DNA of 64,000 bases from the IMG/VR virus record IMGVR_UViG_3300029922_000001, positions 310,001 through 374,000 of that record. One strand, 5' to 3'. This document shows, one piece after another, positions 6,841 to 49,643 of the stretch. Under the pieces are notes generated by a model. That model saw only the letters and a list, made by a program, of their open reading frames with translations, did not search any database and was not told the DNA's origin. The position numbers and the translations under genes are program-made. Each line of letters starts with the position of its first letter. Position 1 is the stretch's first letter.

Positions 6841-6849
6841 CGAGACTTG

Positions 6850-6914
6850 CTCTGAGAAAACCTGGTTAAAATTCGGTTTTCAGTTAGAAAATCTTTAAAG
6901 AATAGGACTCAGAG
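6850..6914 (+). ncRNA. tRNA-sized multi-arm RNA unit, possibly a degenerate tRNA
   Basis: 7-bp closing stem CTCTGAG/CTCAGAG with internal hairpin AAAACC/GGTTTT; CGAGA at 6919. Confidence 0.4.
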
Positions 6915-6918
6915 ATTG

Positions 6919-7181
6919 CGAGAATTTTATTTAGCAGTAATCAGGCTTAGTGTTGTTGAATCCTGAACAACATGAAAAGAATAAAAGATCGAATAAAGAT
7001 ACTCGTAAGAGTTGAGGGTTTCTAGCTTCCCCCAAAAAGTCTAGAGGACGAGAATTTATTCAGCAGTAGTTAAGCTAGTTTTGAGCGAATGGATCAAAAT
7101 GAAAAGAATAAACGATCATTAAGATACTTGCAAGAGTTGAGGGTTTTCTGGCTTTTCCCGCATAAAAGTTAAGGGACGAGA
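6919..7181 (+). ncRNA. two tandem ~130-nt structured RNA repeats
   Basis: shared blocks AGCAGTA.T.A.GCT, ATGAAAAGAATAAA.GATC, GATACT.G.AAGAGTTGAGGGTTT, GGACGAGA; stems differ in sequence but keep pairing. Confidence 0.7.
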
Positions 7182-7216
7182 GTTTTGTGTTTGTGTTTGT
7201 ATTTATATTGAATTGA

Positions 7217-7250
7217 AAGCCTTTGGAATTTTCCAAAGGCTTCTTTTTAT
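7217..7250 (+). terminator. intrinsic terminator of ncRNA locus A
   Basis: AAGCCTTTGGAA-TT-TTCCAAAGGCTT hairpin followed by a T-tract. Confidence 0.8.
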
Positions 7251-7258
7251 AATAGAGC

Positions 7259-7501
7259 ATGACTCAAATCGAAATTGATAACATCAAATCAGCAAAAGAA
7301 TTAAGGCATGAAGAAATTGCTCAAATTAAGACTCAAATTAATATTCTTAAAAAACAAAAAACAGAATTAGATTTACAAGATAACGCTATACAAAAAGCTA
7401 ATTCCGCAATATGTGACCATACATTACCAAATGGTAAAACAGCTTGGCAAGGTGGTTTTATGTTTAGTATATGTTCTATCTGCGATGACTGTGACTTATA
7501 A
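7259..7501 (+). CDS. hypothetical coiled-coil/zinc-ribbon protein
   Basis: CDH...CSICD; leaderless after TATAAT. Confidence 0.65.
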   Translation: MTQIEIDNIKSAKELRHEEIAQIKTQINILKKQKTELDLQDNAIQKANSAICDHTLPNGKTAWQGGFMFSICSICDDCDL

Positions 7502-8464
7502 TACTTTATTTAATTCATCACAAGTCCATTCAATTGCTGCTAGTGTGTTTAGTTTGTGTTCCCATCTAGTTGGGATTGCTTCATAACCATATATCAATCC
7601 TAAAATATTACCAGCTATAGCACCTGTACTATCTGAATCACCATCATGGTTTACAGCATTGACAACACCTGAAACAAAATCCTTTGATGTTAGCGCACAG
7701 TAAATAGCAATTGCTAACGCTTGCTCACCTATCCAACCTTGACCTAATATATTAAGCATAGGCATATTGAAATCTTTCTTTGCAAAGTTTAAAGCATGTT
7801 TAGAATAGAAGTATGTGTCGGTTTCACCAGTTACACTTTTAAGGTACTCTAGCGTCTGTTCTACAGCTTTAAATGGTTCAGTCTGGTTATCTAATAAGGA
7901 TATCAAATAAGCGAACGCTCCAGCAGAATAAATACCATCAGGGTGGTTATGTGATAGGTTAGCGGCTTCTACAGCAAAATCAAAAGCATCTTCTGGTTCA
8001 AAATATAAACCAATTGGAGCAGAACGCATAACCGCACCACAACCCTTTCTATCATTTGGGATAGGGAATTCAGCATTGTGTTCAATGAGATATTGAAATG
8101 AGGTTAAACACGTATGTCCAGCAGATTTATCTCCCCACATGCTTTGAAATTGTAATAGACCTTTTGTGTGTAATTTAGAATTATATTGTTTCTTTTGAGT
8201 TAAATACCATTTCTTATATTCTTCGCGAACGTTGTTAAGTCTTTGTTCTTCTGAGTCGCATGGCAAACTTAATGCATAAGCAGTAAATAGTGTTAACTGT
8301 GTATCATCAGTAATACAACCATCATCTCCATAAGCTGGGTGAATGTCTGTAATTCCGTTTTCTCCATATTGATTTAATATTTCAGATCGTGATTTAAACT
8401 CAACTGGTGCGCCTAATGCATCTCCAACCGCACCACCCATAATACAAGCTTTGACGTTATTCAT
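7496..8464 (-). CDS. ADP-ribosylglycohydrolase (DraG/ARH family)
   Basis: GGAVGDALGAPVEF, ITDDTQLT, KGCGAVMRSAPIGL, SHNHPDG, VNHDGDSDSTGAIAGNILG. Confidence 0.95.
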   Translation of the reverse strand: MNNVKACIMGGAVGDALGAPVEFKSRSEILNQYGENGITDIHPAYGDDGCITDDTQLTLFTAYALSLPCDSEEQRLNNVREEYKKWYLTQKKQYNSKLHTKGLLQFQSMWGDKSAGHTCLTSFQYLIEHNAEFPIPNDRKGCGAVMRSAPIGLYFEPEDAFDFAVEAANLSHNHPDGIYSAGAFAYLISLLDNQTEPFKAVEQTLEYLKSVTGETDTYFYSKHALNFAKKDFNMPMLNILGQGWIGEQALAIAIYCALTSKDFVSGVVNAVNHDGDSDSTGAIAGNILGLIYGYEAIPTRWEHKLNTLAAIEWTCDELNKVL

Positions 8465-8497
8465 GATATTATTATACGTATAATGGTATAATCAGAT

Positions 8498-9097
8498 ATG
8501 GACACATGGCTTACTGCCGATTGGCACTGCGGAGAAGACAGATTTAAACTTATGGGACGACCTTTTACGTCCCCACAACAAATGATTGATACATTAGTCG
8601 AAAACCATAACAAATTAGTAGCTCCTGATGCACATGTTTATATGTTAGGTGATGTTTGTGCTAGTCAACATCCTGAATATCTGGATCAAGTATCTCGTTT
8701 CAACGGTACCAAGGTTCTTTTGCGTGGGAACCATGATCGCGGAATTTCAGACAAAGAATTCTCACCTTATTTTCAAGAAATCATTCCAGAAGGCGAAGGA
8801 ATCTATATCGAATTTGGTGGTATTGATTGTTATCTAACACATTACCCAACTTGTGGTAAAAAAGACTGTTTTAATTTAGTTGGTCATGTCCATAACGCAT
8901 GGCGAATTCAGCTTAATATGCTTAATGTTGGGGTTGATGCTAATCATTTTATTCCAGTAAATACAAAAGTTATTCCAAGACACATTGAATCACTTGGTAA
9001 TTTCTATGATTTAGATGCTTTTGTGTGTTATGACGACATCAATACAAGTCATTGGGCTACCAGAGGGAAGAAAGAAAAATATTTTAACCGCCAATAG
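8498..9097 (+). CDS. calcineurin-like metallophosphoesterase
   Basis: TADWH, LGDV, LRGNHD, LTHYP, GHVH motifs. Confidence 0.9.
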   Translation: MDTWLTADWHCGEDRFKLMGRPFTSPQQMIDTLVENHNKLVAPDAHVYMLGDVCASQHPEYLDQVSRFNGTKVLLRGNHDRGISDKEFSPYFQEIIPEGEGIYIEFGGIDCYLTHYPTCGKKDCFNLVGHVHNAWRIQLNMLNVGVDANHFIPVNTKVIPRHIESLGNFYDLDAFVCYDDINTSHWATRGKKEKYFNRQ

Positions 9098-9482
9098 TAA
9101 CTTCACCAGAGAAAATAGGTACAGAATCTAAATGAGCCTGAATGCTTGGTGTAAGTGGTCTATTGAATGTACCAATTCCAACATAACTTGGGAACAATCC
9201 TAAATCTGTTGAATCTTGTGCTAATCTTACTTGTTGAGCAAATGTGTTAAATTGTGTTTGTGCGGCAAGTAAAAAGTTCGTATTGAACTTAGCTAATTTA
9301 GTAGAACTATTATCAACGCTAGTGTTGACGTTATAAGATAAATTAACAGTAGAAAAACTATTAGTAAGAGTTTGGGTTAAACTTGTACCAGTATGAGACA
9401 TTGTAAAGTTTACTACAGTTACAACTCCAGTGACGGTTACTGAGTTAATTGTGTAATTAATTGTAATGCTTATATCAGCCAT
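9084..9482 (-). CDS. probable virion protein (Thr/Ser/Val-rich)
   Basis: start MADISIT at 9482 downstream of a class III promoter; beta-rich composition. Confidence 0.6.
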   Translation of the reverse strand: MADISITINYTINSVTVTGVVTVVNFTMSHTGTSLTQTLTNSFSTVNLSYNVNTSVDNSSTKLAKFNTNFLLAAQTQFNTFAQQVRLAQDSTDLGLFPSYVGIGTFNRPLTPSIQAHLDSVPIFSGEVTIGG

Positions 9483-9541
9483 GACTATCATTTCTATATA
9501 ATTGTTTGCATATCCTTTTTCAATGTGGTATACTATCAAAC

Positions 9542-9775
9542 ATGGAACCGACTGAAAGACAAATTAATATACTCAAGCAAGCACCACTTTTTAGAGTGAG
9601 GTATGATGAAAAGGTAGAGCCTTGGGCTGTTACTGTAAAAAATACAATGGTTTGCTGGTGGAAGGAAGTTGAAGAATTGCAGCAACTAGGATTATTGAAT
9701 CCTAGGAATGTTTATGAAGCTGATTTGACGCAAGAGGGGCGAATGTACACATATGATAAAAGTAAAACTAACTGA
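9542..9775 (+). CDS. hypothetical protein
   Basis: leaderless ATG after TGGTATACT; similar to the next ORF (T..Q..IL...P...L...GL). Confidence 0.65.
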   Translation: MEPTERQINILKQAPLFRVRYDEKVEPWAVTVKNTMVCWWKEVEELQQLGLLNPRNVYEADLTQEGRMYTYDKSKTN

Positions 9776-10022
9776 CAAACAAATTGACATTCTAAAAAAT
9801 ACTCCATTAGAGTACTGTGATTCTTCTTGGACAAATTTCGGAATGCATAATAACAAATATGCATTCAATCGTAAAACTGGTCATAGAGTTTACGACTGGC
9901 ACGATGTTGAAGATTTAGAAGAAATGGGATTGTTAAAATTCCATAACCTACTAAGCACTTTAATTGTCGTATTAACTCCTAAAGGAAAAGATGCAATAGC
10001 TGAATCTGTAAGTATAATATAG
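9753..10022 (+). CDS. hypothetical winged-helix-like protein
   Basis: LTDKQIDIL...VEDLEEMGLL...LTPKGK. Confidence 0.6.
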   Translation: MIKVKLTDKQIDILKNTPLEYCDSSWTNFGMHNNKYAFNRKTGHRVYDWHDVEDLEEMGLLKFHNLLSTLIVVLTPKGKDAIAESVSII

Positions 10023-10024
10023 AC

Positions 10025-10345
10025 ATGGTTGGCGGTAAAGTAAAAGAAGTCATTGATTGTGGTAATCTCGTTTGGGTAAACTGCGAAGAGAATTGTTATA
10101 GGATTAGCGGATGTAAAGATCCAACTTGTACTCATGAAGAGTGTGCAGTTTATGTAGAGCGTAATGAAAATTCATTAAAGATTAAAGCAGGGGATAAGTT
10201 ATGGTGGCAAGGTCAAAGCACTTATTGGACACCACAACCTTTCACTAAAAATGAAGAAGATTTAAAATGTGGAATAGATTATGAAATCGACATTCGCAAA
10301 ATGAGTGGTTCAGGAGTTAGTAGACCTGAATTAGTTAGTTGTTAA
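10025..10345 (+). CDS. hypothetical phage protein
   Basis: 106-aa ORF. Confidence 0.65.
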   Translation: MVGGKVKEVIDCGNLVWVNCEENCYRISGCKDPTCTHEECAVYVERNENSLKIKAGDKLWWQGQSTYWTPQPFTKNEEDLKCGIDYEIDIRKMSGSGVSRPELVSC

Positions 10346-10493
10346 GAGTTCCCGATAGTGAGGATCAGCTTAATACGTACCGTTTAAACCGTGGCAAAGT
10401 AAGTGATAGGGAGCAACCTCAATCCTCCGGTATCCCTACCTAGTGGGATGACAACCAGGAAAATAGACTGGTACCGAGGGATATAAGGAGTTT
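10346..10493 (+). ncRNA. GC-rich structured intergenic RNA or leader
   Basis: GTTCCC/GGGAGC, GAGGAT/ATCCTC (crossing), ATCCC/GGGAT, CCAG/CTGG pairings before SD AAGGAG. Confidence 0.4.
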
Positions 10494-10733
10494 ATGGAAT
10501 TAGAATTTAAAGGAACATTTGATGAAGAAAATGATACATTTTTTACAGGTGCAATGAGATACATAGGTTGGGAAGATCCAAATTATCCACTACGTAGTGA
10601 CGGATACATATTAGGTATTCCACTTGAAGAAGTATTTGATTTAAGAAAAGCTGTAATCAATGGTATTACTTTTATTTATCAAGAATCGGAAGAAACGGCT
10701 CAAAAAGCTAGAGAATATTTTGAAGAGGCTTGA
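10494..10733 (+). CDS. hypothetical phage protein
   Basis: SD AAGGAG; 79 aa. Confidence 0.7.
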   Translation: MELEFKGTFDEENDTFFTGAMRYIGWEDPNYPLRSDGYILGIPLEEVFDLRKAVINGITFIYQESEETAQKAREYFEEA

Positions 10734-10760
10734 CAAAATCCAATGAATAAGTGCTATAAT
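10730..10760 (+). promoter_or_regulatory. sigma70-like promoter
   Basis: TTGACA-19-TATAAT (TGC extended -10). Confidence 0.65.
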
Positions 10761-10766
10761 AAATCA

Positions 10767-10983
10767 TAAGCAGGGAACATCTTGAATCGTTCAAGATCTT
10801 TGCTTGCTTAAAGAGAAGTTTCGTACTTTCAGCTTTAAAAAGTGCATAAGGTTAATATAAATAGTATAATGTAAGTTGTTTTTTGTTTTCGCGTTAAAAG
10901 CAAATGGTCCGACATTTCGGAAAGTTTCTTACTTTGAACGTAAAATAAGTGGTGGAGGACCTGCGGAAACGTAGCGTCCCTAG
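10767..10983 (+). ncRNA. structured ncRNA locus B
   Basis: ORF-free region between promoter and terminator; hairpins ATCTTGAA/TTCAAGAT and GGACCTGCG-GAAA-CGTAGCGTCC; second TATAAT near 10865. Confidence 0.55.
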
Positions 10984-11015: not shown

Positions 11016-11017
11016 CG

Positions 11018-11494: not shown

Positions 11495-11512
11495 AATTTA
11501 TTATAATAATTT

Positions 11513-13538: not shown

Positions 13539-15371
13539 TTAGAATGTAAACCCTTCGGTTTTAGCCTTGGCGATTGTTGGATTATCAATTGGGCTAGTTC
13601 CTGTTCCGGTGTTACCGGTGGTTCCATTTGGCTCAATGCTGCCAGTTTGGGCAAGACTTCTAGAAGCTTGATATTTCTTTGTTGCTGCTATTGTTTCTGG
13701 TCCAATAATACCATCAATAGCGACTGGGAAGCCTTTATTAGTTAAGAATGTTTGCCATTGTTGAATGGTTGGTTTTTTAACGAATGGTTGTGCTTGACTT
13801 GTTGATCTATAGCTTTGTATTTGTTGATTGTAGTTCATTGCAAATTGTGCAAATTGAGGATTTCCATCAACGCTACCAACCAACCAAGGATATTTAGTTC
13901 TTAATTGAGGTAATGCATCTCTAAGTTTAATACCTTGTTTACCCATTGCAACCGCTTCTTGAACGGCTTGTGCCACGACTGGTGTCATTGGAGTGTTCAA
14001 AGACATATTGTTAGTATCTCTTATGTCTTTATGTTGTTGACTTTGTGGAACGACTGTTTTACCAAGAATGTCTAAACCACCACCAGTATCACCAGCAAAT
14101 TGTGCTAATTCAGCACCTTGATCTGCTCCAATACCAATAACACCTAAAGCACCAGCAATAGGTTGTAAACCAGGAATAATAGCTGAAATACTACCAAGAA
14201 AGTTTGCAAAAAATCCAATAAATTTAGCTCTTGTATATGCATCATTAGCTAAATCAATTTCTCCACCTTGAATTTTTTGACACCAACTATACGCTTCTGG
14301 AACCTGCATAATTAAACCAATAAAAGGTAAATATTTAGTGAATTTACTTAAAGCATTTAAGGCTGGCATAGATGCGCTAATCTTAGCTAATGCATTTGAA
14401 ATTACACTAGCAACTTCTGAATTTTTAGTTGCCGCCGCAGCAGCTTTATCTAATTCACCAGCAACATTACTAAGATTTTCAGCTTTGGCACTTAAACTAG
14501 CAATTTCTTGTGCGGCTTGAGGGTTATTCATTAATTCTGCATTATTTTTTAAAGCTTGTAGACGTTGAATAGCGGCTTGTTGTGCTTCTGGATTATCAGT
14601 TTTATTTAAGTCTTCTGCGATACTTGTTGCCCAATTTTGCTGTTTTAAATCTCCAGCAGCATTTGTAGTATTTGTGGCATTAGCAGCGGGAGTTGCAGCC
14701 GCATTAGCGGCAGGGGCAAGTTGTGTTAATGCTGCATCTGCTTGAGATGCAGCTTGTGTTGCAAGTTGTGTTTCTTGCGTGATAGCTTGTGCTAATTGTG
14801 GATTAGCTTTATATACTAATAGAAATTCAGGATCTTGAGTGGCTTTGGAAACAATTTGTGCTCCAATTTTACTAGCTAGAGCATTCATAACCAGGCTTTC
14901 ATTGCTTCCCATACCTCCAGCCGCAAAAAAAGCTATAGCTTCTCTAGAAATATTAACGCCCCGTTGTAACCATTTTTCTAAACCTACAGCATTCTTGTTT
15001 TTCATTAAATTGTAAAAAGATGGATATTTTTTTAATAATAAAGCTTCTACGTATTTTAATAATTCTCTAGTTGCCACACTTCTGGCTAGTCCACCTGGAT
15101 TATTCCAATCACCAAAAGCAATTTTAGAACCCAGATCAGTTAGGCTTTCACCTTGTGCTGGTGTACCTTTTGGCATATTTGGATTTAATAAAATATTAGA
15201 ATTCCCACCTGAAGGATCTATATTTTGTGTAGGTGAAATCATTGATGGCGATTGATTGAATGCGTTATTTGGATCAAGGAATCTTTGGGCAGTACGAATC
15301 ATATTGCGATCTATTTCATCAGCAAGGTGGTGAAATCCATTTTTATCTAAACTTCTAGCAATACTATCCAT
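13539..15371 (-). CDS. large probable virion protein with C-terminal peptidoglycan-binding domain
   Basis: leader IARSLDKNGFHHLADEID...TAQ; Ala/Gln-rich body; IQQWQTFL..KGF....DGIIGPETIAATKKYQ...L..TG. Confidence 0.75.
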   Translation of the reverse strand: MDSIARSLDKNGFHHLADEIDRNMIRTAQRFLDPNNAFNQSPSMISPTQNIDPSGGNSNILLNPNMPKGTPAQGESLTDLGSKIAFGDWNNPGGLARSVATRELLKYVEALLLKKYPSFYNLMKNKNAVGLEKWLQRGVNISREAIAFFAAGGMGSNESLVMNALASKIGAQIVSKATQDPEFLLVYKANPQLAQAITQETQLATQAASQADAALTQLAPAANAAATPAANATNTTNAAGDLKQQNWATSIAEDLNKTDNPEAQQAAIQRLQALKNNAELMNNPQAAQEIASLSAKAENLSNVAGELDKAAAAATKNSEVASVISNALAKISASMPALNALSKFTKYLPFIGLIMQVPEAYSWCQKIQGGEIDLANDAYTRAKFIGFFANFLGSISAIIPGLQPIAGALGVIGIGADQGAELAQFAGDTGGGLDILGKTVVPQSQQHKDIRDTNNMSLNTPMTPVVAQAVQEAVAMGKQGIKLRDALPQLRTKYPWLVGSVDGNPQFAQFAMNYNQQIQSYRSTSQAQPFVKKPTIQQWQTFLTNKGFPVAIDGIIGPETIAATKKYQASRSLAQTGSIEPNGTTGNTGTGTSPIDNPTIAKAKTEGFTF

Positions 15372-30417: not shown

Positions 30418-30448
30418 ACAAGCATAACTACTTCTGAGTTGTTTATTC

Positions 30449-30634
30449 ATACTGCTGATAAGTAATAGTCGTGTTCTAGGCATGATTTATGAAAGTTGGG
30501 TGTCCCTGTAAAGCAATTATGTGAAGCTAGATATGGAAGGCGTTGCTATACTGCTGATAAGTAATAAAATGTGTTCTAGGCACGATTTATGAAAATTGGG
30601 TGTCCCTAGTGCGTTTTTCATATTCTAGGCGAGA
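30449..30634 (+). ncRNA. two tandem ~60-nt structured repeats with ~99-nt period, in the 5' region of 30646
   Basis: ATACTGCTGATAAGTAATA..GTGTTCTAGGCA.GATTTATGAAA.TTGGGTGTCCCT at 30449 and 30548; CGAGA at 30630. Confidence 0.6.
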
Positions 30635-30645
30635 ATCAAGATAAA

Positions 30646-31167
30646 ATGAAAGACGTTAAAGACTACACAATAGGAGAAATTATTGCACTTGGCATTGGTG
30701 ACAATATCACTAATCAGGCAATAGATAAAATTACTGCAATTGTACATTTGGCTTGGGCTAATGGTCATGCAATTGGATTTGAAGAAAAAGAAGAACTTCA
30801 ATCCATTAGAGAAAGAGAGTCATTAGCAAATTGTCTTCAAGAAAGTTTTAGAATATTTTCACCATCACACAAGCCTGATTGGATCAATAATCTCCCAAGT
30901 GAACAAGATTTTATTGATTTTGTTAATCCGAAAGAAGAAGCTGCTTCTGTTGCCTGTTTAGTGGATAATCATGGATTTCCTTATTCAGAACGTCGGTTTA
31001 CTGTGAAAATGATAGTTGCCACAAATCCAAAAGGTGTTTATCAGTATGTTATCCAAGATAATGCTCTCAATAAAACTATTACGCTTAAAGGTAAAAACAA
31101 AGAAGAAGTATATGCTTTTGCTAGATCTAAGAACTTAGAAGGTCATTATTTCCCATATAACATATAA
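30646..31167 (+). CDS. hypothetical protein
   Basis: 173-aa ORF. Confidence 0.7.
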   Translation: MKDVKDYTIGEIIALGIGDNITNQAIDKITAIVHLAWANGHAIGFEEKEELQSIRERESLANCLQESFRIFSPSHKPDWINNLPSEQDFIDFVNPKEEAASVACLVDNHGFPYSERRFTVKMIVATNPKGVYQYVIQDNALNKTITLKGKNKEEVYAFARSKNLEGHYFPYNI

Positions 31168-43210: not shown

Positions 43211-43225
43211 GGTATACTTGCGTAT

Positions 43226-43441
43226 ATGAACACAGACATATGCTTTACCAAAAACGGATTAAGGTATTCTATAACAGAAAACGCCTACGATCTTAATGCT
43301 TCGCACGTTAAACTCCCAAGCGGAGAATATTATCGCATTGAATCTTGGCTGGAATCTATGCCACCACAAGTTATTCTTAGTAATAAACCAGAAACTATAG
43401 ATTTGGATGATGTAATAGCTTATGCAAAAACAATTAATTAA
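43226..43441 (+). CDS. hypothetical protein
   Basis: leaderless promoter. Confidence 0.65.
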   Translation: MNTDICFTKNGLRYSITENAYDLNASHVKLPSGEYYRIESWLESMPPQVILSNKPETIDLDDVIAYAKTIN

Positions 43442-43601
43442 GGAAGTCGATCACTCTTTTGATGATGATTTCTATCAAAAATACGTAACACCACAAACTA
43501 GAACAATTCGAACTCATACTACGTAATGGTAATACAATGTATCAGATAATACTATTCGAAAATGGATAAAAGCTTATCAAAGTGAGGTATAATTAAAGCA
43601 T

Positions 43602-43672
43602 GTCTTAGAAGCATTTTGGTGATGCAAGGGACTCTAAATCCCTATAACGGAGTTCGAATCTCCGCTAAGACG
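43602..43672 (+). tRNA. amber suppressor tRNA (anticodon CTA)
   Basis: GTCTTAG-AA-GCAT(TTTGGTG)ATGC-A-AGGGA(CTCTAAA)TCCCT-ATAA-CGGAG(TTCGAAT)CTCCG-CTAAGAC-G; no encoded CCA. Confidence 0.9.
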
Positions 43673-43682
43673 CGAGAAAAAT

Positions 43683-43850
43683 ATGAAAAAACTCACAAAA
43701 AAAGAAAATGCTATTTTTGATGCAGCATGGGATGAAGGCTATGAAGCCTATCATAAAGCTGTGTTACGTGAAAATAATCCTCATATTGTTTTAGTGGCAA
43801 ATGATGGTTGGGATGAAGGTTGGGAAATTGCATGGGAAGATGATCAATAA
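43683..43850 (+). CDS. Rmf-like miniprotein (55 aa)
   Basis: WDEGYEAY...NNPH...GWDEGW..AW. Confidence 0.55.
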   Translation: MKKLTKKENAIFDAAWDEGYEAYHKAVLRENNPHIVLVANDGWDEGWEIAWEDDQ

Positions 43851-43867
43851 GGTGTATAATAACGATA

Positions 43868-44095
43868 ATGAAGAAAATGAAGAAAATTCAAGCTAAATAT
43901 GTTACCGTGTGGGATAGTGGACTAAGGATTTCTGCAAACTGTGAAATTGATATTTCAGTAAGACCAGTGCGCTTAATGAGCGTAGAATCAGTTTATAATC
44001 CAGATATTCAAGCTGGTAATATTATTGAAGAATATATTACACACCACGAATATGATCCAGAATATGTTCCAGTATATAGGGAATGGGAAGTTTAA
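43868..44095 (+). CDS. hypothetical protein
   Basis: Y.TVWDSG motif. Confidence 0.65.
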   Translation: MKKMKKIQAKYVTVWDSGLRISANCEIDISVRPVRLMSVESVYNPDIQAGNIIEEYITHHEYDPEYVPVYREWEV

Positions 44096-44133
44096 ACTTC
44101 CCCAACGAGAAAATTTGAGGTATACTTGTTCAC

Positions 44134-44367
44134 ATGAAGAATTATTATAGCTCTGAAAAAATCAACGAAAGAATTAATGAAAGAACTAAGATTTATGATT
44201 TGCTTGCAGAAGTAATTGGAAAACCTAGTTTTCTTAATGAATTGCAAAAAAGATATCCCAATGTTGATTGGAACCAAGTACAATATGATGATGGTCAAAC
44301 TAGTTTAATGCACGTTCAGAATGATATTGAACATTTAAATATTGACGCGACAATTTACTACCCATAA
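44134..44367 (+). CDS. hypothetical protein
   Basis: class II promoter. Confidence 0.7.
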   Translation: MKNYYSSEKINERINERTKIYDLLAEVIGKPSFLNELQKRYPNVDWNQVQYDDGQTSLMHVQNDIEHLNIDATIYYP

Positions 44368-44368
44368 T

Positions 44369-44989
44369 ATGCTATATACATTTGATAAAGAATACACATT
44401 CTCCATTACAGACGCTGAAATCAAGCGTTGTGAAGAATTCGCAGATGCTTCTACAAACGACTATTGGAAGCGCAACCAAACTGATTCAGATCGAATCAAA
44501 CAACAGATTGTTTTCGGAAAACTAGGAGAGCTAGTTGCCGCTAAGTTCCTTGTACGACATTTGAAACAACCTGTTATGGAACCAGACTTCCGCATTTACA
44601 CTAGAGATACCAAAAGTTGGGATGCGGACTTCCCCTATAAGTCATTAGGACTTGGAAATAAGAATTTCCATGTTAAGGCTTATGCTCCAAGTGATAAACC
44701 AGAATCATGGGCATTTCAATTTAAGAACAAGAGTGGCAACGGTGGAACCGATAAGCTATTTGAGAACTTCCCAGAACATAAGAAGGATTGTGTTATCTGT
44801 GTTTTGGTTGATGTAGATAATAAAAAGGGCTACATCAGAGTATTGGCTAATTGGGGAGACTTGCATTATCTTCTACGTGATCCAATATCTTATCAATTGA
44901 GAGGATTGAAGAAGTTCCTTTATTATGAGGACCTTATCAATCTCAAGAACGAAGAAAAAGATAGTGAAAAATCTGATTCAGAAGCTTGA
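44369..44989 (+). CDS. conserved phage protein, possible PD-(D/E)XK fold
   Basis: GKLGELVA, PDF.IY, WDADF, HVKA. Confidence 0.6.
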   Translation: MLYTFDKEYTFSITDAEIKRCEEFADASTNDYWKRNQTDSDRIKQQIVFGKLGELVAAKFLVRHLKQPVMEPDFRIYTRDTKSWDADFPYKSLGLGNKNFHVKAYAPSDKPESWAFQFKNKSGNGGTDKLFENFPEHKKDCVICVLVDVDNKKGYIRVLANWGDLHYLLRDPISYQLRGLKKFLYYEDLINLKNEEKDSEKSDSEA

Positions 44990-45014
44990 CAAAGACTAGG
45001 AAGATGGGTATAAT
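44986..45014 (+). promoter_or_regulatory. consensus sigma70 promoter
   Basis: TTGACA-17-TATAAT. Confidence 0.85.
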
Positions 45015-45019
45015 GAATA

Positions 45020-45590
45020 CGTTGCAGGGTTGAGAGACTGTAGCTGGAGCCTCCTAAAAAGGTTTGGTTGGATTCCTTGTAAAAATCCAACATGAAACCG
45101 AGAGGAATGACCCATAACTTAGCAGACCTCTTTCTAGCGGGGGTTCTCGAAAAAGCTAGAAACCGAGGGGCTGTTCGATTTCAGCGATTGTAACCTTTCT
45201 TAGTAGGATTCTCGAAAACTAAGAACCGAGAAGGTGTATTAATGGCTTCTTTCCTGGTAGAAGTTCTCGAAAAACTAGGAACCGAGAGTTGATTTTAAGT
45301 TCAATCATTGCCTTGCTTGTTGGGTTCTCGAAAAAACAAGCTCCTTCCGAGATAGATCGTCTAACGATCACGCAGAAAAATAGTGGGGTGTTCTCGGACT
45401 CCAGGTACCAACTATGAAGTATGAAGTAAAGTAAACGAAAAATAATTGTCCCATGAGATTGGGTTGACCAACTCCGCAAGTTTAAGCGACTGATTAACTA
45501 TGCGTAAAAGTAAAAAGTGCAAATATTATAAATGGCGTAAGTAGTTTATTTTGCGAATTTTCCTCAGAAATGAGGGAAAACGAGAAAATA
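45020..45590 (+). ncRNA. ncRNA locus C with repeated TTCTCGAAA-loop hairpins or pseudoknots
   Basis: four units near 45128-45170, 45193-45235, 45245-45290 and 45312-45352, plus a fifth GTTCTCG loop near 45390; no credible ORF. Confidence 0.7.
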
Positions 45591-45607
45591 TGATGGTATA
45601 ATAAGTT

Positions 45608-46636
45608 ATACAAAAGAACATTGAAAATTGAATATGAGCCGCGCTCAATAAATATCGGAAAAGAACGGTAAAATTGAAGTTTAGTAAATTTAAATCCGTC
45701 ACCTAATCAGGTAAAAACATGAAAGTAAATAGATAATACGGAAATCATTAACTGCTTAGTCAGTTACTATCATTAAGGGGAAAGAAAGAATAAGATAGTC
45801 CACCGACGCGATACATATTAAAGTAGGGTACGAAATAGAAATATGAACGTATCTTGGAATTAATTTTCCAACGAGATTTGTTGAAAAACAAAATAGGGAT
45901 GGGATAGACCGAATAAACGCTTTTGGAGTCTGCAACAGTAGTTGTGACGATGAATTAAGAAGTTAGAAATAATAGTTCACTGGGCACCCATGCGAATTAA
46001 GGATGTCAAGATCGGGAAGGTGGCAAACTTCCCTTGCGAGATGTTAGAAATACTATAAAAGTACACCAACTTAGTTGTGGAAAATTAATTAATTCTAGCA
46101 CTCCGAGATTTATTAGGTGGCAAAACCGCAATATTTATAAGTTGCGTACCTAGCTGTAGGGTGATAGCCTATCCGTTTTTATAGGGTAAACATACAGTCT
46201 AATGAATCTCTAAATTGAAAACTGAATATGGAATAACACTCGCTCTAGAGCTATCGGCTTTTAAACAACCTGGTGCCAAAATAAAGTAACGGCTATAACT
46301 ATATAGTTAGTTTTCGAATTATAGTGAAAGGAATTAATATTCCTAACGAGATTTATATGATCGCAGATTCCGCTTGCAAACATAGTTGGTTTCGGGAGCG
46401 ACGTTAATGGGTATATCCCACGAGATTTTTACAGACTGTTTGATTGGATTATCTAACAAAACATAAAGAACATCAACACTAAACCGCAAAAGAAAGAGTC
46501 ATGTACTACCATGAACGCTTTTGCATTTTTACCATTCTGTTATTTGTTTGTAAGAATCTTCTGGAGCAATTGTAGTAGTTGCTTGGTTATTGTATCCCTT
46601 TCATTTCAATTTGCCCTACCCACAAGGTGGGGCAAA
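45608..46636 (+). ncRNA. large (~1 kb) ncRNA locus D
   Basis: own TGGTATAAT (-10 near 45597), boxA-like elements at 45616 and 46214, many hairpins, five hairpin-CGAGA ends, terminal hairpin 46610-46636. Confidence 0.65.
46610..46636 (+). terminator. terminator-like hairpin
   Basis: TTTGCCCTACC-CACAA-GGTGGGGCAAA. Confidence 0.6.
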
Positions 46637-46651
46637 ACTGTTTATAATAGC

Positions 46652-46936
46652 ATGATGACAGCTATAGAAATTTTACAAGCAGCCTTGGATAATGATTTAC
46701 GCATTATCACTTTTATCAATGATGGTCAAAATCCACAAATTAAAGGTAAGTATCTAGCACAATTCTTTGTCTTCCCAGTAAAATCAACTGATATTGTTCT
46801 AACTGGTGAAGGTGATACTATCGAACAAGCTATTTTAGATATTCAGCCATATTTCGAAGAGTATGGATATAATATGCCACCCAAAATATCAGAAAAAGAT
46901 GAAGAAATTGATCTAGAAACGAAAACTGAGGTATAA
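46652..46936 (+). CDS. hypothetical protein
   Basis: leaderless after TATAAT; the track start at 46511 runs into the ncRNA. Confidence 0.65.
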   Translation: MMTAIEILQAALDNDLRIITFINDGQNPQIKGKYLAQFFVFPVKSTDIVLTGEGDTIEQAILDIQPYFEEYGYNMPPKISEKDEEIDLETKTEV

Positions 46937-46945
46937 TAAGATCAA

Positions 46946-47389
46946 ATGGGAAATCTAAATCTAAAAACATCAGACACACCTGAAAAGCAAATGGAAGCTT
47001 CTGGTTGTTTGACTCTAATCTTTTGTCTATGCCTTACACCGTTCGTTTGGTATTACATGACAATGTACAACGCTTATGTTTTTGCTGACATCTGGAATTG
47101 GTTCATGCCTGTTCTCTTTGGCGTAAAAGCAATTACTATGTGGCACGCTGCCGCTATCGGTTCACTCTCTGGATTTATCACTTCCGGTCTTTATGTGTTG
47201 CACGTTAGTACTCAACAGGAATTTAATAAGATTAAGAAGGCTTTGAATATTCCTGATGAACAATTGCTTACAGGATGGGATGTTCTTGGGCATTTCGTTA
47301 AACTTTGGGGTATTGGTATTATGGTTATCACTGTTATGTGGTTCTTTGCCTATGTCGTCAATGTGTTCTTCTTCACGAAGGGCGGTTAA
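46946..47389 (+). CDS. hypothetical membrane protein
   Basis: 3-4 TM segments; WNWFMP.LFG. Confidence 0.7.
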   Translation: MGNLNLKTSDTPEKQMEASGCLTLIFCLCLTPFVWYYMTMYNAYVFADIWNWFMPVLFGVKAITMWHAAAIGSLSGFITSGLYVLHVSTQQEFNKIKKALNIPDEQLLTGWDVLGHFVKLWGIGIMVITVMWFFAYVVNVFFFTKGG

Positions 47390-47428
47390 ATATTTCCCCA
47401 ATAGGGGAAATCGAGGTATACTGACAAT

Positions 47429-47800
47429 ATGATTTACTTTATCTTATATGTATTGTTTGTATTAGTTTCTTTTGTGCTGGTGTTAAAATTCTACCCTTAT
47501 GAATTCGCTGAATGCAAAATTGATGATTCGTCTCAAGAATACGATCTAGAAATTAATCCTATTACGAATCGACTAGAAGTTGTAAAAACTAAAGACATTG
47601 ACGAAAGCTATGTGTTTGAATTTTTATTGTTATATCCATTCTATATGCTTAAATTGCTATTTAAGTTTTTAGCATATTGGACATACCGTACATTTAATAA
47701 GGGTATTACCAAAGAACAGAAATTAGAAGCAGAACTTCAGGATTTAAACCAGGCAATTAAGGAAGCAAAAGCAGAATTAGATAGTCTAAAAGAGGTATAA
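47429..47800 (+). CDS. hypothetical membrane protein
   Basis: class II promoter; TM segments. Confidence 0.7.
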   Translation: MIYFILYVLFVLVSFVLVLKFYPYEFAECKIDDSSQEYDLEINPITNRLEVVKTKDIDESYVFEFLLLYPFYMLKLLFKFLAYWTYRTFNKGITKEQKLEAELQDLNQAIKEAKAELDSLKEV

Positions 47801-47848
47801 TTCAAGCATGTTAGGCGAAATTATCCGCAAATGAGGTATACTTAGCAA

Positions 47849-48448
47849 ATGCTTATAGATCCAGATCATATTACAAACTACAATCGCACAGAAAAAGAAC
47901 TTCAGTGTTTTCTATTATTTGCTATTATGGTTGCTGGTAAAAAAGCTAAAATGATGGCACCTAAATTAGATCATTTTCTTTTCATAAATGATCAGCTAAT
48001 GCCATTTGAATTCATTCAGAAGTTGATGAATAATGATGTACTTTATGGTGCTTTATTGCATTCTAAAATCGGTAAGTATAAGTTATTATTACAGTCTTTG
48101 CCTCAATTAGTGAATAGTGGCTTAGATTTGCATACGTGTACGATAGAGGATTTGGAAAAGATTAAAGGTATTGGTCCTAAATCGTCTAGATTTTTTATAT
48201 TACACTCACGCCCTAATCAAAGGATTGCGGCACTTGATACGCATATTTTGAAATTTATTAAAGAGAATTTAGACCCCAAAGCACCTAAGCAAACCCCAAG
48301 CGGAAAACGATATTTGCAGTTAGAAAAACTTTTTGTTGAATATTGTGAACAAAATAATCTCTGCATAGCAGATTTTGACCTTCAGCTTTGGGTAAAATAT
48401 TCATCAGAGAACGATAAAAAAAGGAAAGGAAAGAAAAAAAATGTTTGA
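47849..48448 (+). CDS. helix-hairpin-helix DNA glycosylase-like protein (Ogg-like)
   Basis: LEKIKGIGPKSSRFF, AALDTHILKF, Y..LE..F, DFDLQLW. Confidence 0.75.
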   Translation: MLIDPDHITNYNRTEKELQCFLLFAIMVAGKKAKMMAPKLDHFLFINDQLMPFEFIQKLMNNDVLYGALLHSKIGKYKLLLQSLPQLVNSGLDLHTCTIEDLEKIKGIGPKSSRFFILHSRPNQRIAALDTHILKFIKENLDPKAPKQTPSGKRYLQLEKLFVEYCEQNNLCIADFDLQLWVKYSSENDKKRKGKKKNV

Positions 48449-48656
48449 ATCAACTGAAACTACGTATACTTTAGATAAGACTAAATTGGAAAATTTTCTC
48501 ACTGAGAAGCTTACAGAAGCTGGGAATTTTAGTCCCAGATTGCAAACTATTAGTTTTAATTGGAAGTATGGAAGTCGTCTTACTGGTTATAGTATAAATG
48601 AACACAACGATCCATATTTTGATGGTGTTTCCATTACCGTAAAGGATATGGAGTAA
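48441..48656 (+). CDS. hypothetical protein
   Basis: 71-aa ORF. Confidence 0.6.
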   Translation: MFESTETTYTLDKTKLENFLTEKLTEAGNFSPRLQTISFNWKYGSRLTGYSINEHNDPYFDGVSITVKDME

Positions 48657-48660
48657 TAAT

Positions 48661-49014
48661 ATGGCATTAAATGGATATAAAATCGAAAATGAATCTTACT
48701 GTTGGTATTCTCCTACAATGGAAAAAGAATATGGTACAGTAACTTACTGTGATAAAAATGGAGATTATTTAATCTGTACATTAGCTACACCAACCGAAAA
48801 TCTTGAGTGCAAATATTCTGATGATTTAATATTTATTGGTAAAGGCGTTTGGGTTCATAGTAGTATTAGATGGATAAAAGGATGGATAAACAGATTCAAT
48901 GGAAAACTAATGAATGATTTTGTAAATGACGACATTACAATTGAAGAGATTATGCAACGTGCTAATGATTGTGAAAAATATACAGGAGTAGGATTATGGT
49001 CTATGAACATGTAA
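48661..49014 (+). CDS. hypothetical protein
   Basis: 117-aa ORF. Confidence 0.6.
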   Translation: MALNGYKIENESYCWYSPTMEKEYGTVTYCDKNGDYLICTLATPTENLECKYSDDLIFIGKGVWVHSSIRWIKGWINRFNGKLMNDFVNDDITIEEIMQRANDCEKYTGVGLWSMNM

Positions 49015-49199
49015 GCGAATATAAACCAAGTTGGGAATATCCTGATACAATGTATTGTCAGCGTTGTAAACATGATGTACAAACAGATAAACGATTTTCT
49101 GGTGTTACTTGTAGTAAATGTGGAATAGTTATTGTTGATACAAATCCTTGGATTAAAATTCCAGTTACAATAGAAGAAGTAATAAGGGAAAGCGAATGA
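48996..49199 (+). CDS. zinc-ribbon protein
   Basis: CQRC...CSKCG. Confidence 0.6.
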   Translation: MVYEHVSEYKPSWEYPDTMYCQRCKHDVQTDKRFSGVTCSKCGIVIVDTNPWIKIPVTIEEVIRESE

Positions 49200-49387
49200 T
49201 AACAGTGACTTGCGATAAATGCGGTGGAAAAACAAAATTGACTACAAATGACGGTTATGGTTTTTTCTGTGATAATTGTGATCAAGTGATCAACATTAAC
49301 GTTGCTTTGAGTGGTATAATAGAGAAGTTGGCGCAACTAGAAAATGAACTAGAAGCTAATAAGAAATATGCATTTTTGAAAAATTAA
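49196..49387 (+). CDS. zinc-ribbon protein
   Basis: CDKCG...CDNC. Confidence 0.6.
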   Translation: MITVTCDKCGGKTKLTTNDGYGFFCDNCDQVININVALSGIIEKLAQLENELEANKKYAFLKN

Positions 49388-49404
49388 AGTGTATTTAAAT
49401 AAAT

Positions 49405-49485
49405 CGGGTGGTGGCGTAATGGTAGCCGCAAATCTCTTAAAAAGATTCGTTGAAAAACGTGTGGGTTCGAGTCCCACCCGCCCGC
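49405..49485 (+). tRNA. tRNA-Leu (TAA)
   Basis: CGGGTGG/CCGCCCG acceptor, AATCT(CTTAAAA)AGATT anticodon arm, variable arm CGTT-GAAA-AACG, GTGGG(TTCGAGT)CCCAC; no CCA. Confidence 0.9.
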
Positions 49486-49643
49486 GAGAATTATATATTA
49501 AACACAAAGGAATATATCTAATCATGTGTTAACTATATATTATGAGATGTGAAGGCTATCGTGGTTCTTTTGATAAATTTTTAGAAGCTTATGGCGATCT
49601 TGATAAATTTCCCCAATGCCTCAATTAGAGGTATACTCGAATC

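Follow-up and report, generated by a model that had tools for sequence, protein, structure and literature searches.

A CGAGA word as a candidate RNA-level punctuation signal in a jumbo-phage lineage

Why does the word CGAGA occur in the place where CCA would be expected behind tRNAs of a jumbo phage, and why does it recur behind many small structured RNAs of unassigned type in the same genome? To answer this question we analyzed a window of 64 000 nt (positions 310,001 to 374,000 of IMG/VR record IMGVR_UViG_3300029922_000001), which is part of a 441-kb peat phage genome, together with further pieces of this genome and its relatives. A sequence-only reading of the window had listed 17 CGAGA copies behind two tRNAs, a tRNA-like unit and several non-coding RNAs, almost always right after a hairpin, and this observation was confirmed. 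All 17 copies are present on the + strand (6841, 6919, 7049, 7177, 30630, 43673, 45099, 45227, 45283, 45348, 45581, 45872, 46037, 46104, 46347, 46421 and 49485), and we found one more copy of the same kind at 44106, which had been missed.

Next, we examined the context of each copy, with all features lying on the + strand. The locus A transcription unit starts from an extended -10 hexamer TATAAT at 6753-6758 (TGGGTATAAT), with the RNA start inferred at about 6765, and the same TGnGGTATAAT type recurs before the suppressor-type tRNA and before locus C. The first module of locus A (6765-6840), which had been read as a tRNA-like unit, is called neither by ARAGORN nor by Rfam; it ends in CCCA and is directly followed by CGAGA (6841-6845). 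Further tags follow the module closed by CTCTGAG/CTCAGAG (6846-6918; tag 6919-6923), repeat unit Y1 (6924-7048; tag 7049-7053) and repeat unit Y2 (7054-7176; tag 7177-7181). Locus A is closed by a canonical intrinsic terminator at 7216-7249 (GAAAGCCTTTGG/CCAAAGGCTTC plus a T run), which shows that CGAGA is not the terminator. At locus B the tag (30630-30634) lies at the end of a tandem-repeat leader, 11 nt before the ATG at 30646. The amber-suppressor-type tRNA (anticodon CUA, 43602-43672) has its own promoter 8 nt upstream, its discriminator is G43672, and the tag (43673-43677) follows directly, with an ATG 5 nt later. The additional copy (44106-44110) lies behind a gene-end hairpin GGGAAG/CTTCCC (44085-44102) and CAA, and is followed by a promoter. 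In tRNA-Leu (anticodon UAA, 49405-49484, acceptor stem CGGGTGG/CCGCCCG) the tag (49485-49489) abuts the acceptor stem, so that its C would have to serve as the discriminator. Both tRNAs read G-CGAGAA where CCA would be.

The densest group of tags belongs to locus C, which is preceded by a perfect TTGACA-17-TATAAT promoter (44986-45014) conserved in two relatives, L468 (63% identical) and L470 (62% identical). A first module ends with the tag at 45099-45103, which is a candidate pairing partner for the loop of the first hairpin of an array. In this array hairpin U1 (45131-45168) has the stem TTTCTAGC/GCTAGAAA and the loop GGGGGTTCTCGAAAAA, followed by C plus CGAGG; U2 (45197-45231) has the stem TTCTTAG/CTAAGAA and the loop TAGGATTCTCGAAAA, followed by C plus CGAGA (45227), and is 75% identical to a unit in L470; U3 (45251-45287) has the stem TTCCTGG/CTAGGAA and the loop TAGAAGTTCTCGAAAAA, followed by C plus CGAGA (45283); U4 (45315-45352) has the stem GCTTGTT/AACAAGC and the loop GGGTTCTCGAAAA, followed by TCCTTC plus CGAGA (45348); and the degenerate U5 (45380-45415) carries GTTCTCGG in its loop region. 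The five loops carry TTCTCG at 45144, 45209, 45264, 45325 and 45391, the exact complement of CGAGAA. Further downstream, tags follow hairpin TTTTCCCTCA/TGAGGGAAAA just upstream of a promoter at 45597-45602 (tag 45581-45585), hairpin TTGGAA/TTCCAA directly (45872-45876), hairpin GGGAAG/CTTCCC plus TTG (46037-46041), the 62-nt module 46042-46103 (46104-46108), hairpin AGGAAT/ATTCCT plus AA (46347-46351) and hairpin TGGG/CCCA (46421-46425). To see whether these RNAs are made, we used assembled metatranscriptome contigs, whose ends carry no information. Within 6 kb, contigs from four runs cover only 45361-45521, which lies inside the CGAGA-bounded interval 45353-45580 and includes U5, and 45622-45811, which belongs to a roughly 270-nt non-coding RNA conserved in L468 (63% over 243 nt). 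These stretches are the interiors of the two longest CGAGA-bounded intervals (of five that are 160 nt or more), whereas the small modules show no coverage.

We then asked whether the word is more frequent than expected by chance. The total count is not enriched, as 34 copies on both strands compare with 41.8 +/- 6.2 in dinucleotide shuffles. However, the distribution is extreme: 18 + strand copies lie in about 8.4 kb of non-coding DNA, while only 1 lies in 55.6 kb of sense-strand coding sequence, where a synonymous-codon shuffle expects 12.4-12.7 (0 of 300 shuffles were as low). In sense-strand coding sequence CGAG is the most depleted of all 256 tetramers, with 5 copies against 38.2 expected (z = -6.5), and the depletion holds in all three frames (1/14.1, 3/9.1 and 1/14.9), while the other 15 CGNN words show ratios of 0.64-1.17. 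The avoidance follows gene orientation: in the minus-strand gene block at 11-20.7 kb CGAGA occurs three times on the antisense strand and once on the sense strand (11081, in the HNH-AP2 gene). Pooled over 183 genes (94.6 kb) of the lineage we observed CGAG 14 times against 66.3 expected, CGAGA 3 times against 23.1 and CGAGAWW once against 11.2, while the antisense form WWTCTCG was found 9 times against 9.0. The antisense word CTCG is also mildly low (50 against 74.6), which may come from a separate avoidance of TCGA. One site counted here as punctuation, at 14507 of genome piece L173, lies inside a called 97-aa ORF unless that gene starts at the downstream ATG, and this ORF was left out of the pooled test. 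The CGAGA copies that remain in coding sense lie in mobile genes (an HNH-AP2 gene and a TnpB gene) or on a stop codon. The same test on 22 other low-GC phage loci gave 252 against 235, and neither these loci nor the antisense strand show a comparable depletion.

In order to see how general the tag is, we analyzed tRNAs in five separate pieces of this genome. All 21 ARAGORN-called tRNAs carry CGAGA at their 3' end (window 2/2, L115 5/5, L173 7/7, L205 4/4, L055 3/3), and so does one further tRNA found only by Rfam. In about 200 other phage loci, which were selected for having at least one such hit, only 69 of 667 tRNAs do. From 51 sites the full site was derived as V-CGAGA-W5, with C found once in 51 at each of the five downstream positions. 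Across 71 sites in the lineage a helix of at least 4 bp ends 0-3 nt upstream in 73%, against 31% of random positions. In 26 of the 32 tRNAs of the lineage pieces the letters between discriminator and CGAGA are nothing (14), C (9) or CCA (3) and never anything else, all of them compatible with a tRNA 3' end, so the boundary probably sits just 5' of the C. The offset is not uniform, however: of these lineages three tRNAs are listed with CGAGA abutting the acceptor stem and three more with no CGAGA. Two of the latter overlap the stem end, so that a cut 5' of the C would remove the discriminator, at least one abutting case looks like a register error, and one tRNA carries CCA+CGAAA instead.

The pattern is shared to different degrees by the relatives. 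L469 (IF3 73% identical) has 8 tRNA-type sites plus one terminator-adjacent site, with sense CGAG 0 against 8.6 expected and antisense 9 against 9.2, and in L465 sense CGAG is found once against 6.1. L468 keeps the suppressor tRNA with the same G plus CGAGA, and a hairpin plus CGAGA, but its neighbouring tRNA ends in CCA without the tag and its avoidance is only mild (13 against 20.8). L470 keeps two UUCUCG-type loop hairpins, each followed by CGAGA.

Taken together, our findings suggest, with moderate confidence, that CGAGA followed by about five A/U residues and placed 0-3 nt after a helix is an RNA-level punctuation signal of this lineage, that is, a dedicated RNA-cutting or RNA-recognition signal not described before. 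What the analysis establishes is the motif with its positions, the strand-specific avoidance, the conservation in relatives and the transcription of locus C, while cleavage, its exact position, the nature and origin (phage or host) of the enzyme and the role of the array are inferred. In this view, polycistronic precursors (tRNA clusters, tRNA-mRNA co-transcripts and the multi-module non-coding RNAs of loci A and C) would be cut most likely immediately 5' of the C by a factor reading a short single-stranded word, most plausibly a sequence-specific endoribonuclease of the RegB / MazF / ToxN kind. RNase P would then remove the remaining CGAGAWWAU leader from the next tRNA, and the CCA-adding enzyme would complete 3' ends left as N73, N73-C or N73-CCA. 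Because the word alone would be harmful in a messenger, CGAG would have been purged from the sense strand of the phage's genes, so that the nuclease could act on precursors, and possibly on host RNA, while sparing phage mRNA. The hairpins at the head of locus C would either sequester their neighbouring CGAG in serial pseudoknots or act as a ToxI-like regulator or decoy of the same factor. However, no RegB, MazF/PemK, ToxN, HEPN, EndoU or Cas6 hit was found among 128 proteins from about 100 kb, roughly 22% of the genome.

The interpretation offered by the sequence-only reading is therefore supported in part. Its suggestion of a maturation or cleavage tag releasing small RNAs from polycistronic precursors fits everything found: the tag follows every tRNA in clusters whose 9-15 nt spacers, consisting only of CGAGA plus 4-10 A/U nt, cannot hold promoters or terminators, it separates the four modules of locus A that share one promoter and one canonical terminator, and the word is purged from the sense strand of mRNAs only. 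The partnership with the RNA ligase and the phosphoesterase proposed there stays conjectural. The alternative suggestion, a T-box-like docking code by which the array captures tagged RNAs, is not supported, as nothing resembles a T-box and the array holds five CGAG and five loops in one-to-one order, which can form ordinary intramolecular pseudoknots. The complementarity itself is real and conserved in a relative, but is better read as serial pseudoknots or a ToxI-like regulator.

We also considered a version in which the array is cut into roughly 55-65-nt hairpin RNAs whose UUCUCG loops pair in trans with CGAGA(A) tags on tRNA precursors and other RNAs, to guide, dock or block the processing factor, or in which they bind and hold the nuclease as ToxI holds ToxN. 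In favour of this possibility, the stems covary while the loop is invariant, the array sits behind its perfect promoter, predicted duplexes are -6.7 to -9.9 kcal/mol, and U5's loop lies in the RNA that is actually detected, whereas its candidate cis partner at 45348 lies outside the contigs. Moreover, the hairpin type is conserved in L470 but absent from L468, which also has the weakest CGAG avoidance and a tRNA without the tag, although this co-occurrence rests on three relatives. On the other hand, pairing is only 5-6 bp, both partners are invariant so that no covariation between them can be scored, the one-to-one cis partners make trans pairing unnecessary to explain the complementarity, the loop's extra G would pair with a C at tag position +7 that occurs in 1 of 51 tags, and no toxin gene follows the array. 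We regard this version as unlikely. Only slightly less likely is that no dedicated factor exists and the tag is an optimised trailer for host RNase Z, RNase P, RNase E/Y or exonuclease trimming. tRNAs that do not encode CCA need RNase Z or exonucleases and the CCA-adding enzyme anyway, the A/U-rich, C-free tail resembles RNase E/Y-type single-stranded sites, a U precedes most tRNA 5' ends, as RNase P prefers, and a 3'-5' exoribonuclease gene (Rv2179c-like) sits beside a tRNA cluster. However, none of these enzymes is known to need an invariant 5-nt word, and they would explain neither the purge of bare CGAG from all three frames of mRNAs nor the tag after short 5-6 bp hairpins and terminators; as RNase Z cuts after N73, the C or CCA inserts before the tag would be pointless, and about 600 tRNAs of other phages lack the tag.

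Two further readings appear very unlikely. Helix plus ACGAGA could copy the 3' half of type III-A CRISPR repeats, whose crRNA 5' tag is ACGAGAAC, so that a Cas6 would process these RNAs, or they and the GUUCUCG 'anti-tag' loops would act as RNA anti-CRISPRs: S. epidermidis crRNA begins with 5'-ACGAGAAC (PMC5389561), four of the five loops read GUUCUCG, the exact complement of CGAGAAC, and phage RNA mimics of repeats are known (PMC10651486). Yet tag positions +6/+7 are A/U and not AC, the offset from the helix varies by 0-3 nt and the helices share no sequence, a structure-specific Cas6 would not drive removal of bare CGAG from mRNAs, no cas gene or CRISPR array appeared in about 100 kb (only a TnpB was found), and a 5-7 nt coincidence with one of many known tags is not improbable. 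Equally doubtful is a signal at the level of DNA or transcription, either a compact promoter or terminator for a phage RNA polymerase or orientation-biased avoidance of a non-palindromic restriction site. Some tags are indeed followed by TATG at the next tRNA start, and the genome does avoid restriction-type words (GGCC 0 against 28, TCGA 63 against 112), but the distance from tag to the next RNA start varies from 4 to 10 nt, termination at each tag would silence downstream tRNAs, canonical terminators and sigma-70-type promoters are in use, and the avoidance flips with gene orientation rather than keeping one orientation genome-wide, while the full antisense word is not depleted.

Among known systems, the closest in logic is the T4 RegB endoribonuclease with ribosomal protein S1, whose target is an 11-nt single-stranded GGAGAAUAAAA with a C-poor, A-rich tail (PMC1702504). 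Both are phage-associated short single-stranded words of the form xGAG followed by such a tail of about 7 nt, lie in intergenic regions of early-type transcripts and depend on the context around a 4-nt core; here, however, the core is CGAG(A) and not GGAG, it sits after helices and tRNAs and not inside Shine-Dalgarno sequences, it would mark RNA maturation boundaries rather than inactivate mRNAs, the word is purged from the whole coding complement, and no RegB homologue was found in the 128 proteins scanned. MazF-type toxins are single-strand-specific RNases reading 3-7 nt, to which 'ACA-less' messengers become immune simply by lacking the word, comparable to the near absence of CGAGAWW from the 183 pooled genes; in contrast, the avoidance observed here is genome-wide in a virus, the same word would be used constructively as tRNA and non-coding-RNA punctuation, and no PemK/MazF domain was found in the proteins scanned. 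Type III toxin-antitoxin systems (ToxIN, CptIN) comprise arrays of pseudoknotted RNA repeats cut by their own toxin, and phages are known to carry antitoxin-like arrays. The locus C array likewise is a tandem array of structured units, each bounded by the presumed cleavage word, with pseudoknot potential and its own strong promoter, but its units are only 67-75% alike with covarying stems, no toxin ORF follows, no ORF of at least 80 aa exists on the + strand for 1.5 kb even with TAG read as sense, and the word is used throughout the genome and not only in the array. With CRISPR repeats, Cas6 and RNA anti-CRISPRs (Racr) the resemblance is a hairpin followed by ACGAGA, as at the 3' end of type III-A repeats, whereas identical repeats, spacers and cas genes are absent from the about 100 kb covered and the tail after CGAGA is A/U and not AC. 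Finally, in the punctuation of polycistronic transcripts by T7 RNase III sites, in mitochondrial tRNA punctuation and in the RNase P/E separation of bacterial tRNA operons, structured elements mark where long precursors are cut into functional RNAs, and here, too, tRNAs and mRNAs share transcripts; in the present lineage, however, the shared feature is an invariant primary-sequence word beside the helix and not the helix itself, and this word is counter-selected in mRNAs.

The window is bases 310001-374000 of a phage contig of 441,498 bp with about 33% G+C (IMGVR_UViG_3300029922_000001), and the DNA runs that hold it are peat metagenomes. A contig of 521,591 bp carrying an identical protein also exists, whereas a DNA similarity search found nothing similar among deposited annotated phages, and a search of IMG/VR with flanking proteins for close relatives returned only the same contig. 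We first checked the positions of the CGAGA word and observed that all 17 copies located by the sequence-only reading are present on the + strand, so that its observation is confirmed; a further copy of the same type, at 44106, had been missed. The whole-window count is not enriched (34 copies on both strands against 41.8 +/- 6.2 in shuffles), and it is the distribution that is abnormal. Using about 105 curated ORFs, we found that 18 of the 21 + strand copies lie in about 8.4 kb of non-coding DNA on the transcribed strand, while the other three lie antisense to a minus-strand gene. Only one copy in the whole window lies in sense-strand coding sequence (55.6 kb), inside an HNH-AP2 homing-endonuclease gene.

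Next, we investigated the avoidance of the word in messengers with a synonymous-codon shuffle that keeps each protein and its codon usage. CGAGA is expected 12.4-12.7 times in sense and is seen once (0 of 300 shuffles were as low). The core of the avoided word is CGAG, which is the most depleted of all 256 tetramers (5 against 38.2, z = -6.5), ahead of the palindromes GGCC (0 against 28) and TCGA (63 against 112). The latter two look like ordinary restriction-site avoidance, which for GGCC is shared by the related contigs L465, L468 and L469 described below; AGGAG and GGAGG are also depleted inside genes. The depletion of CGAG is present in all three reading frames (1/14.1, 3/9.1, 1/14.9), for which reason we rejected an explanation by codon usage or translation, and general CpG loss was rejected because the other fifteen CGNN words have ratios of 0.64-1.17; AGAG, GGAG and TGAG have ratios of 0.8-1.1. 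The depletion follows gene orientation and not DNA strand, which excludes one-orientation evasion of a restriction enzyme. Applying the same pipeline to 22 other low-GC phage loci gave 252 against 235. Two of the five surviving sense CGAG belong to a promoter-like word, GGGAAATTCGAGGTATACT, which recurs before genes (47405-47425, 58100-58120, 59590-59610 and 62915-62935) and accounts for several of the CGAGG copies that are not punctuation sites.

In order to extend the analysis to the rest of the genome, we ran pattern scans for tagged tRNA pairs in IMG/VR. Only this contig has multiple hits, and the scans returned four more pieces of it (L115, L173, L205 and L055). Every tRNA called by ARAGORN carries the tag (5/5, 7/7, 4/4 and 3/3 in these pieces, respectively, plus 2/2 in the window), and so does one further tRNA seen only by Rfam. 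Among 667 tRNAs of the other roughly 200 loci, which were chosen for having at least one such hit, 69 have it. The same scan in GTDB genomes and JGI metagenomes, which was not exhaustive, gave single chance matches and no genome with systematic tagging, except the metagenome contig L465; as a search for the host it is therefore uninformative rather than negative. An inference of the host from IF3 homologues was likewise rejected, as cellular hits are only 35-43% identical and taxonomically mixed. In the clusters one tRNA is separated from the next only by CGAGA plus 4-10 A/U letters (for example ...CCGGGA CGAGA ATAT GCGGGG...), and the tag also follows a gene-end hairpin and a canonical terminator. 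A logo of 51 sites reads V-CGAGA-W5, with CGAGA in 51 of 51 sites, U once in 51 at position -1, A/U in 42-47 of 51 sites at positions +5 to +9, and C once in 51 at each of the five positions after the word. A helix of at least 4 bp ends 0-3 nt upstream in 73% of 71 sites, against 31% of random positions.

The two tRNA units in the window (starting at 43602 and 49405) were recognized both by ARAGORN and by Rfam RF00005 (54.6 and 49.3 bits). In contrast, the unit at 6765-6840, which had been described as tRNA-like, has no ARAGORN call and no Rfam tRNA hit even at E <= 10, and only its terminal CCA is tRNA-like. Only the two tRNAs passed the Rfam models, including those of known large phage-associated RNAs such as GOLLD and ROOL; the best other hit is 16-24 bits, far below the gathering score. 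The tRNA at 43602-43672 is of the amber-suppressor type (anticodon CUA), and such tRNAs are conserved in the lineage (a second CUA tRNA in L205, and 1756-1828 in the related contig L468). TAG ends only 7 of 105 called genes in the window, so stop-codon recoding of some genes is possible, but no hidden ORF appeared in locus C (the hairpin array and the non-coding RNAs following it) when TAG was read as sense. Many genes have a TGnGGTATAAT or TATACT -10 element only 7-9 nt before the ATG (43211-44140, 49620-49647 and elsewhere; for example 43215/43227, 44121/44136 and 49631/49645), which implies leaderless mRNAs. The suppressor tRNA and the transcription unit of locus A likewise start at the predicted transcription start, and the phage also encodes its own IF3 (L173 11385-11915).

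The arrangement of the sites suggests a processing mark. Spacers of 9-15 nt cannot hold sigma-70-type promoters or terminators, and termination at each tag would silence the downstream tRNAs. Locus A has one extended -10 promoter (6753-6758), four modules each ending in CGAGA, and one textbook terminator (7216-7249). The distance from the tag to the next tRNA start varies from 4 to 10 nt, which argues against a compact phage-polymerase promoter, and for this reason a promoter reading of CGAGA...TATG was rejected. Among the 32 tRNAs of the lineage pieces, the letters between the discriminator and CGAGA are nothing (14), C (9) or CCA (3), and never anything else, although exceptions exist: in three tRNAs the tag abuts the stem, at least one of these cases looking like a register error, and three more have no CGAGA by this register, in two of which the word overlaps the stem end. 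One tRNA in L465 has CCA followed by CGAAA. The first module of locus A likewise ends in CCA followed by CGAGA. If the RNA is cut just 5' of the C, the products would be N73, N73-C or N73-CCA, all of which are either mature or direct substrates of the CCA-adding enzyme, whereas RNase Z, which cuts after N73, would give no reason for these inserts.

We then compared related contigs. L469, an 11-kb contig from another sample whose IF3 is 73% identical, has eight tRNA-type units and one terminator followed by CGAGA, mostly with TAAAT after it (two have other A/U-rich tails). It has no CGAG at all in sense-strand coding sequence (8.6 expected, 0 of 200 shuffles) and a normal antisense count of 9 against 9.2. 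L465, a metagenome contig that an exact 35-mer did not find in IMG/VR, shows ten tRNA-cluster sites and one intergenic site, and sense CGAG of 1 against 6.1. L468 (45% G+C; the neighbouring protein is 63% identical) keeps the suppressor tRNA followed by G plus CGAGA, and a hairpin plus CGAGA after a gene, but a second tRNA ends in CCA without the tag, avoidance is mild (13 against 20.8) and there is no UUCUCG array. L470 (62% identical) keeps the locus C promoter followed by two hairpins with loops UUCUCCCGAAAAA and GGGUUCUCGAAAA, each followed by CGAGA. Pooled over 183 genes and 94.6 kb, CGAG is seen 14 times against 66.3, CGAGA 3 against 23.1 and CGAGAWW 1 against 11.2, while the antisense WWTCTCG is 9 against 9.0.

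Within the array of locus C, hairpins U1-U4 (45131-45341) have stems that differ while staying paired (TTTCTAGC/GCTAGAAA, TTCTTAG/CTAAGAA, TTCCTGG/CTAGGAA and GCTTGTT/AACAAGC), whereas their loop R3-6-UUCUCG-A4-6 is invariant. A fifth, degenerate hairpin (45380-45415) carries GUUCUCGG. The 4-5 units are spaced 55-65 nt apart and are 67-75% identical, and Tandem Repeats Finder does not call them. Five CGAG (45099, 45164, 45227, 45283 and 45348) and five loops follow each other in strict alternation, so that each loop could pair with the CGAG just after its own stem or with the one before it. The predicted energies of the two registers are alike (-6.7 to -9.9 kcal/mol), without covariation to score. 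The upstream register would give a classical H-type pseudoknot with a 6-bp stem 1, an A-rich loop across its minor groove and an 18-26 nt linker, while the downstream register, inferred from pseudoknot geometry alone to be poor, would need one nucleotide to span a 7-8 bp helix. The complementarity therefore needs no trans partner. However, the loops could still pair with tags on other RNAs, and the fifth loop lies in an RNA whose cis partner appears to be cut away. Neither the sequence nor the structure of a T-box (specifier loop, T-box bulge pairing with NCCA) was recognized in locus C, which has no Rfam match either at the gathering threshold or at E <= 10.

Over window 43550-49549, four metatranscriptomes from peat and permafrost yield contigs only at 45361-45521 and 45622-45811, which lie inside the two longest CGAGA-bounded intervals of locus C (233 and 291 nt). 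Most smaller modules would be lost in standard libraries, but the 243-nt interval 46109-46351 and the 165-nt interval 45877-46041 are also uncovered, which this reading does not explain. The data show that locus C yields stable RNA and are compatible with cutting at the tags, but, these being assembled contigs, their ends prove nothing. A non-coding RNA of about 270 nt present in the metatranscriptomes (45604-45871) is conserved in relatives (L468 3548-3781, 63% over 243 nt; L470 1036-1108), appears to have a paralogue downstream (46109-46346) sharing ATTGAAAAyTGAATATG, and matches no Rfam family. At 30420-30645, two tandem copies of a roughly 100-nt element (ACTGCTGATAAGTAATA...GTGTTCTAGGCA.GATTTATGAAA.TTGGGTGTCCCT) lie between a promoter and the gene at 30646; this could be a tandem cis-regulatory RNA and has no Rfam match.

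To find a candidate enzyme, we scanned 128 proteins from the window and the four extra pieces (about 100 kb, leaving out about 78% of the genome) with Pfam and PHROG and found no RegB, MazF/PemK, ToxN, HEPN, EndoU or Cas6 family. The scan did find, in the window, an RNA ligase (56926-58086), a metallophosphoesterase (8498-9097), P-loop kinases and a class I tRNA synthetase of the Trp/Tyr family, and, beside tRNA clusters, Tpt1, DUF4326, IF3, a 3'-5' exoribonuclease and a TnpB. These fit an RNA-end-healing toolkit, but nothing links them to the tag, although the ligase and the phosphoesterase had been proposed as possible partners. A conserved block of IF3, RNA 2'-phosphotransferase (Tpt1/KptA) and DUF4326 sits directly upstream of a tRNA cluster in two related phages (L173 10471-11915 and L469 7088-8529), and together with the RNA ligase, kinases and phosphoesterase it suggests a eukaryote-style heal-and-seal RNA repair route. 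The ORF just upstream of the array (44342-44989) was considered as the nuclease, but it looks like a T4 endonuclease IV / PD-(D/E)XK DNA nuclease and is not evidence for an RNase. The TnpB gene (L055 3310-4656; OrfB_IS605 plus a Cas12f-like TNB domain) lies next to a tRNA-Leu cluster and is one of the few genes that still carry CGAGA in sense, as expected for a recent mobile arrival. We further observed a rich ADP-ribose toolkit (window 7496-8464, L115 451-1374, L173 5840-6352 and L469 3778-5070), consisting of two ADP-ribosylglycohydrolases, a NADAR domain protein and, in the relative, a WGR-PARP protein. Eight tandem 69-nt (23-aa) repeats (54182-54731) lie inside a 336-aa ORF (54106-55116), and a 75-80% similar repeat gene lies next to a tRNA cluster in L465 (1-790). 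Among the small ORFs of the window and sister loci, taken together, two proteins match ribosome modulation factor (RMF) and there is a weak hit to the sporulation anti-sigma factor Fin.

Taken together, the interpretation of the sequence-only reading is partly supported: its idea of a processing tag is the best explanation and is held with moderate confidence, while its docking idea is not supported in its T-box form. Our data establish a lineage-specific RNA word with a strict positional grammar and a genome-wide, strand-specific purge, whereas cleavage just 5' of the word by an unidentified short-motif endoribonuclease is inferred. A more far-reaching reading, which the evidence leaves possible but which we consider unlikely, is that the lineage runs a two-part RNA system. 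In this view a nuclease with a five-letter specificity would mature all phage tRNAs and small RNAs and may destroy host messengers while phage messengers are invisible to it, and small hairpin RNAs, cut from the same system's own array, would base-pair with the tag through their UUCUCG loops and guide, dock or titrate the enzyme. This would be a virus-encoded, RNA-programmed RNA-processing machine with a genome-wide 'self' code.

If CGAGA is a cleavage or recognition tag, it would be the clearest case known to us in which a virus has rewritten its entire coding complement around one RNA word, the RNA counterpart of restriction-site avoidance, with the same word used constructively to mature its own tRNAs and small RNAs. 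It would give a testable specificity (V-CGAGA-W5 after a helix, as in a hairpin or tRNA plus CGAGAUAAAU) for an enzyme yet to be found, which could be useful as a short-motif RNA tool. It would also offer a simple sequence signature, word depletion on the sense strand plus enrichment after tRNAs, for finding similar codes in other huge phages. Finally, it would tie together features that huge-phage genomics has listed but not explained: large tRNA sets, RNA repair genes (RNA ligase, Tpt1 and phosphoesterase), IF3, leaderless-type promoters and abundant unknown non-coding RNAs. A literature search for the motif gave nothing relevant, and we found no description of such a code.

Among known systems, T4 RegB with S1 is the closest in logic. 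Its target is an 11-nt single-stranded GGAGAAUAAAA with a C-poor, A-rich tail (PMC1702504) of about 7 nt, which is needed for S1 stimulation, and its cleavage lies inside the motif and leaves cyclic-phosphate and 5'-OH ends. Here the core differs by one letter (CGAG(A), not GGAG), the tail rule is the same, the location and use differ, and no RegB gene was found among the 128 proteins scanned. The resemblance of a helix plus ACGAGA to the end of type III-A CRISPR repeats, with the crRNA tag ACGAGAAC (PMC5389561), and of GUUCUCG to its complement, fails on the tail (A/U, not AC), on the variable offset and on the mRNA avoidance; moreover, the repeats of the array are degenerate, and no Cas family other than a TnpB appeared in the scanned proteins. 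ToxIN provides the precedent for an RNA array bounded by its nuclease's own site, but the defining downstream toxin gene is absent: there is no ORF of at least 80 aa on the + strand in 44990-46510, none longer than 51 aa with TAG read as sense, and the next gene, at 46511, has no family hit. MazF and motif-free messengers, in turn, give the precedent for immunity by avoidance.
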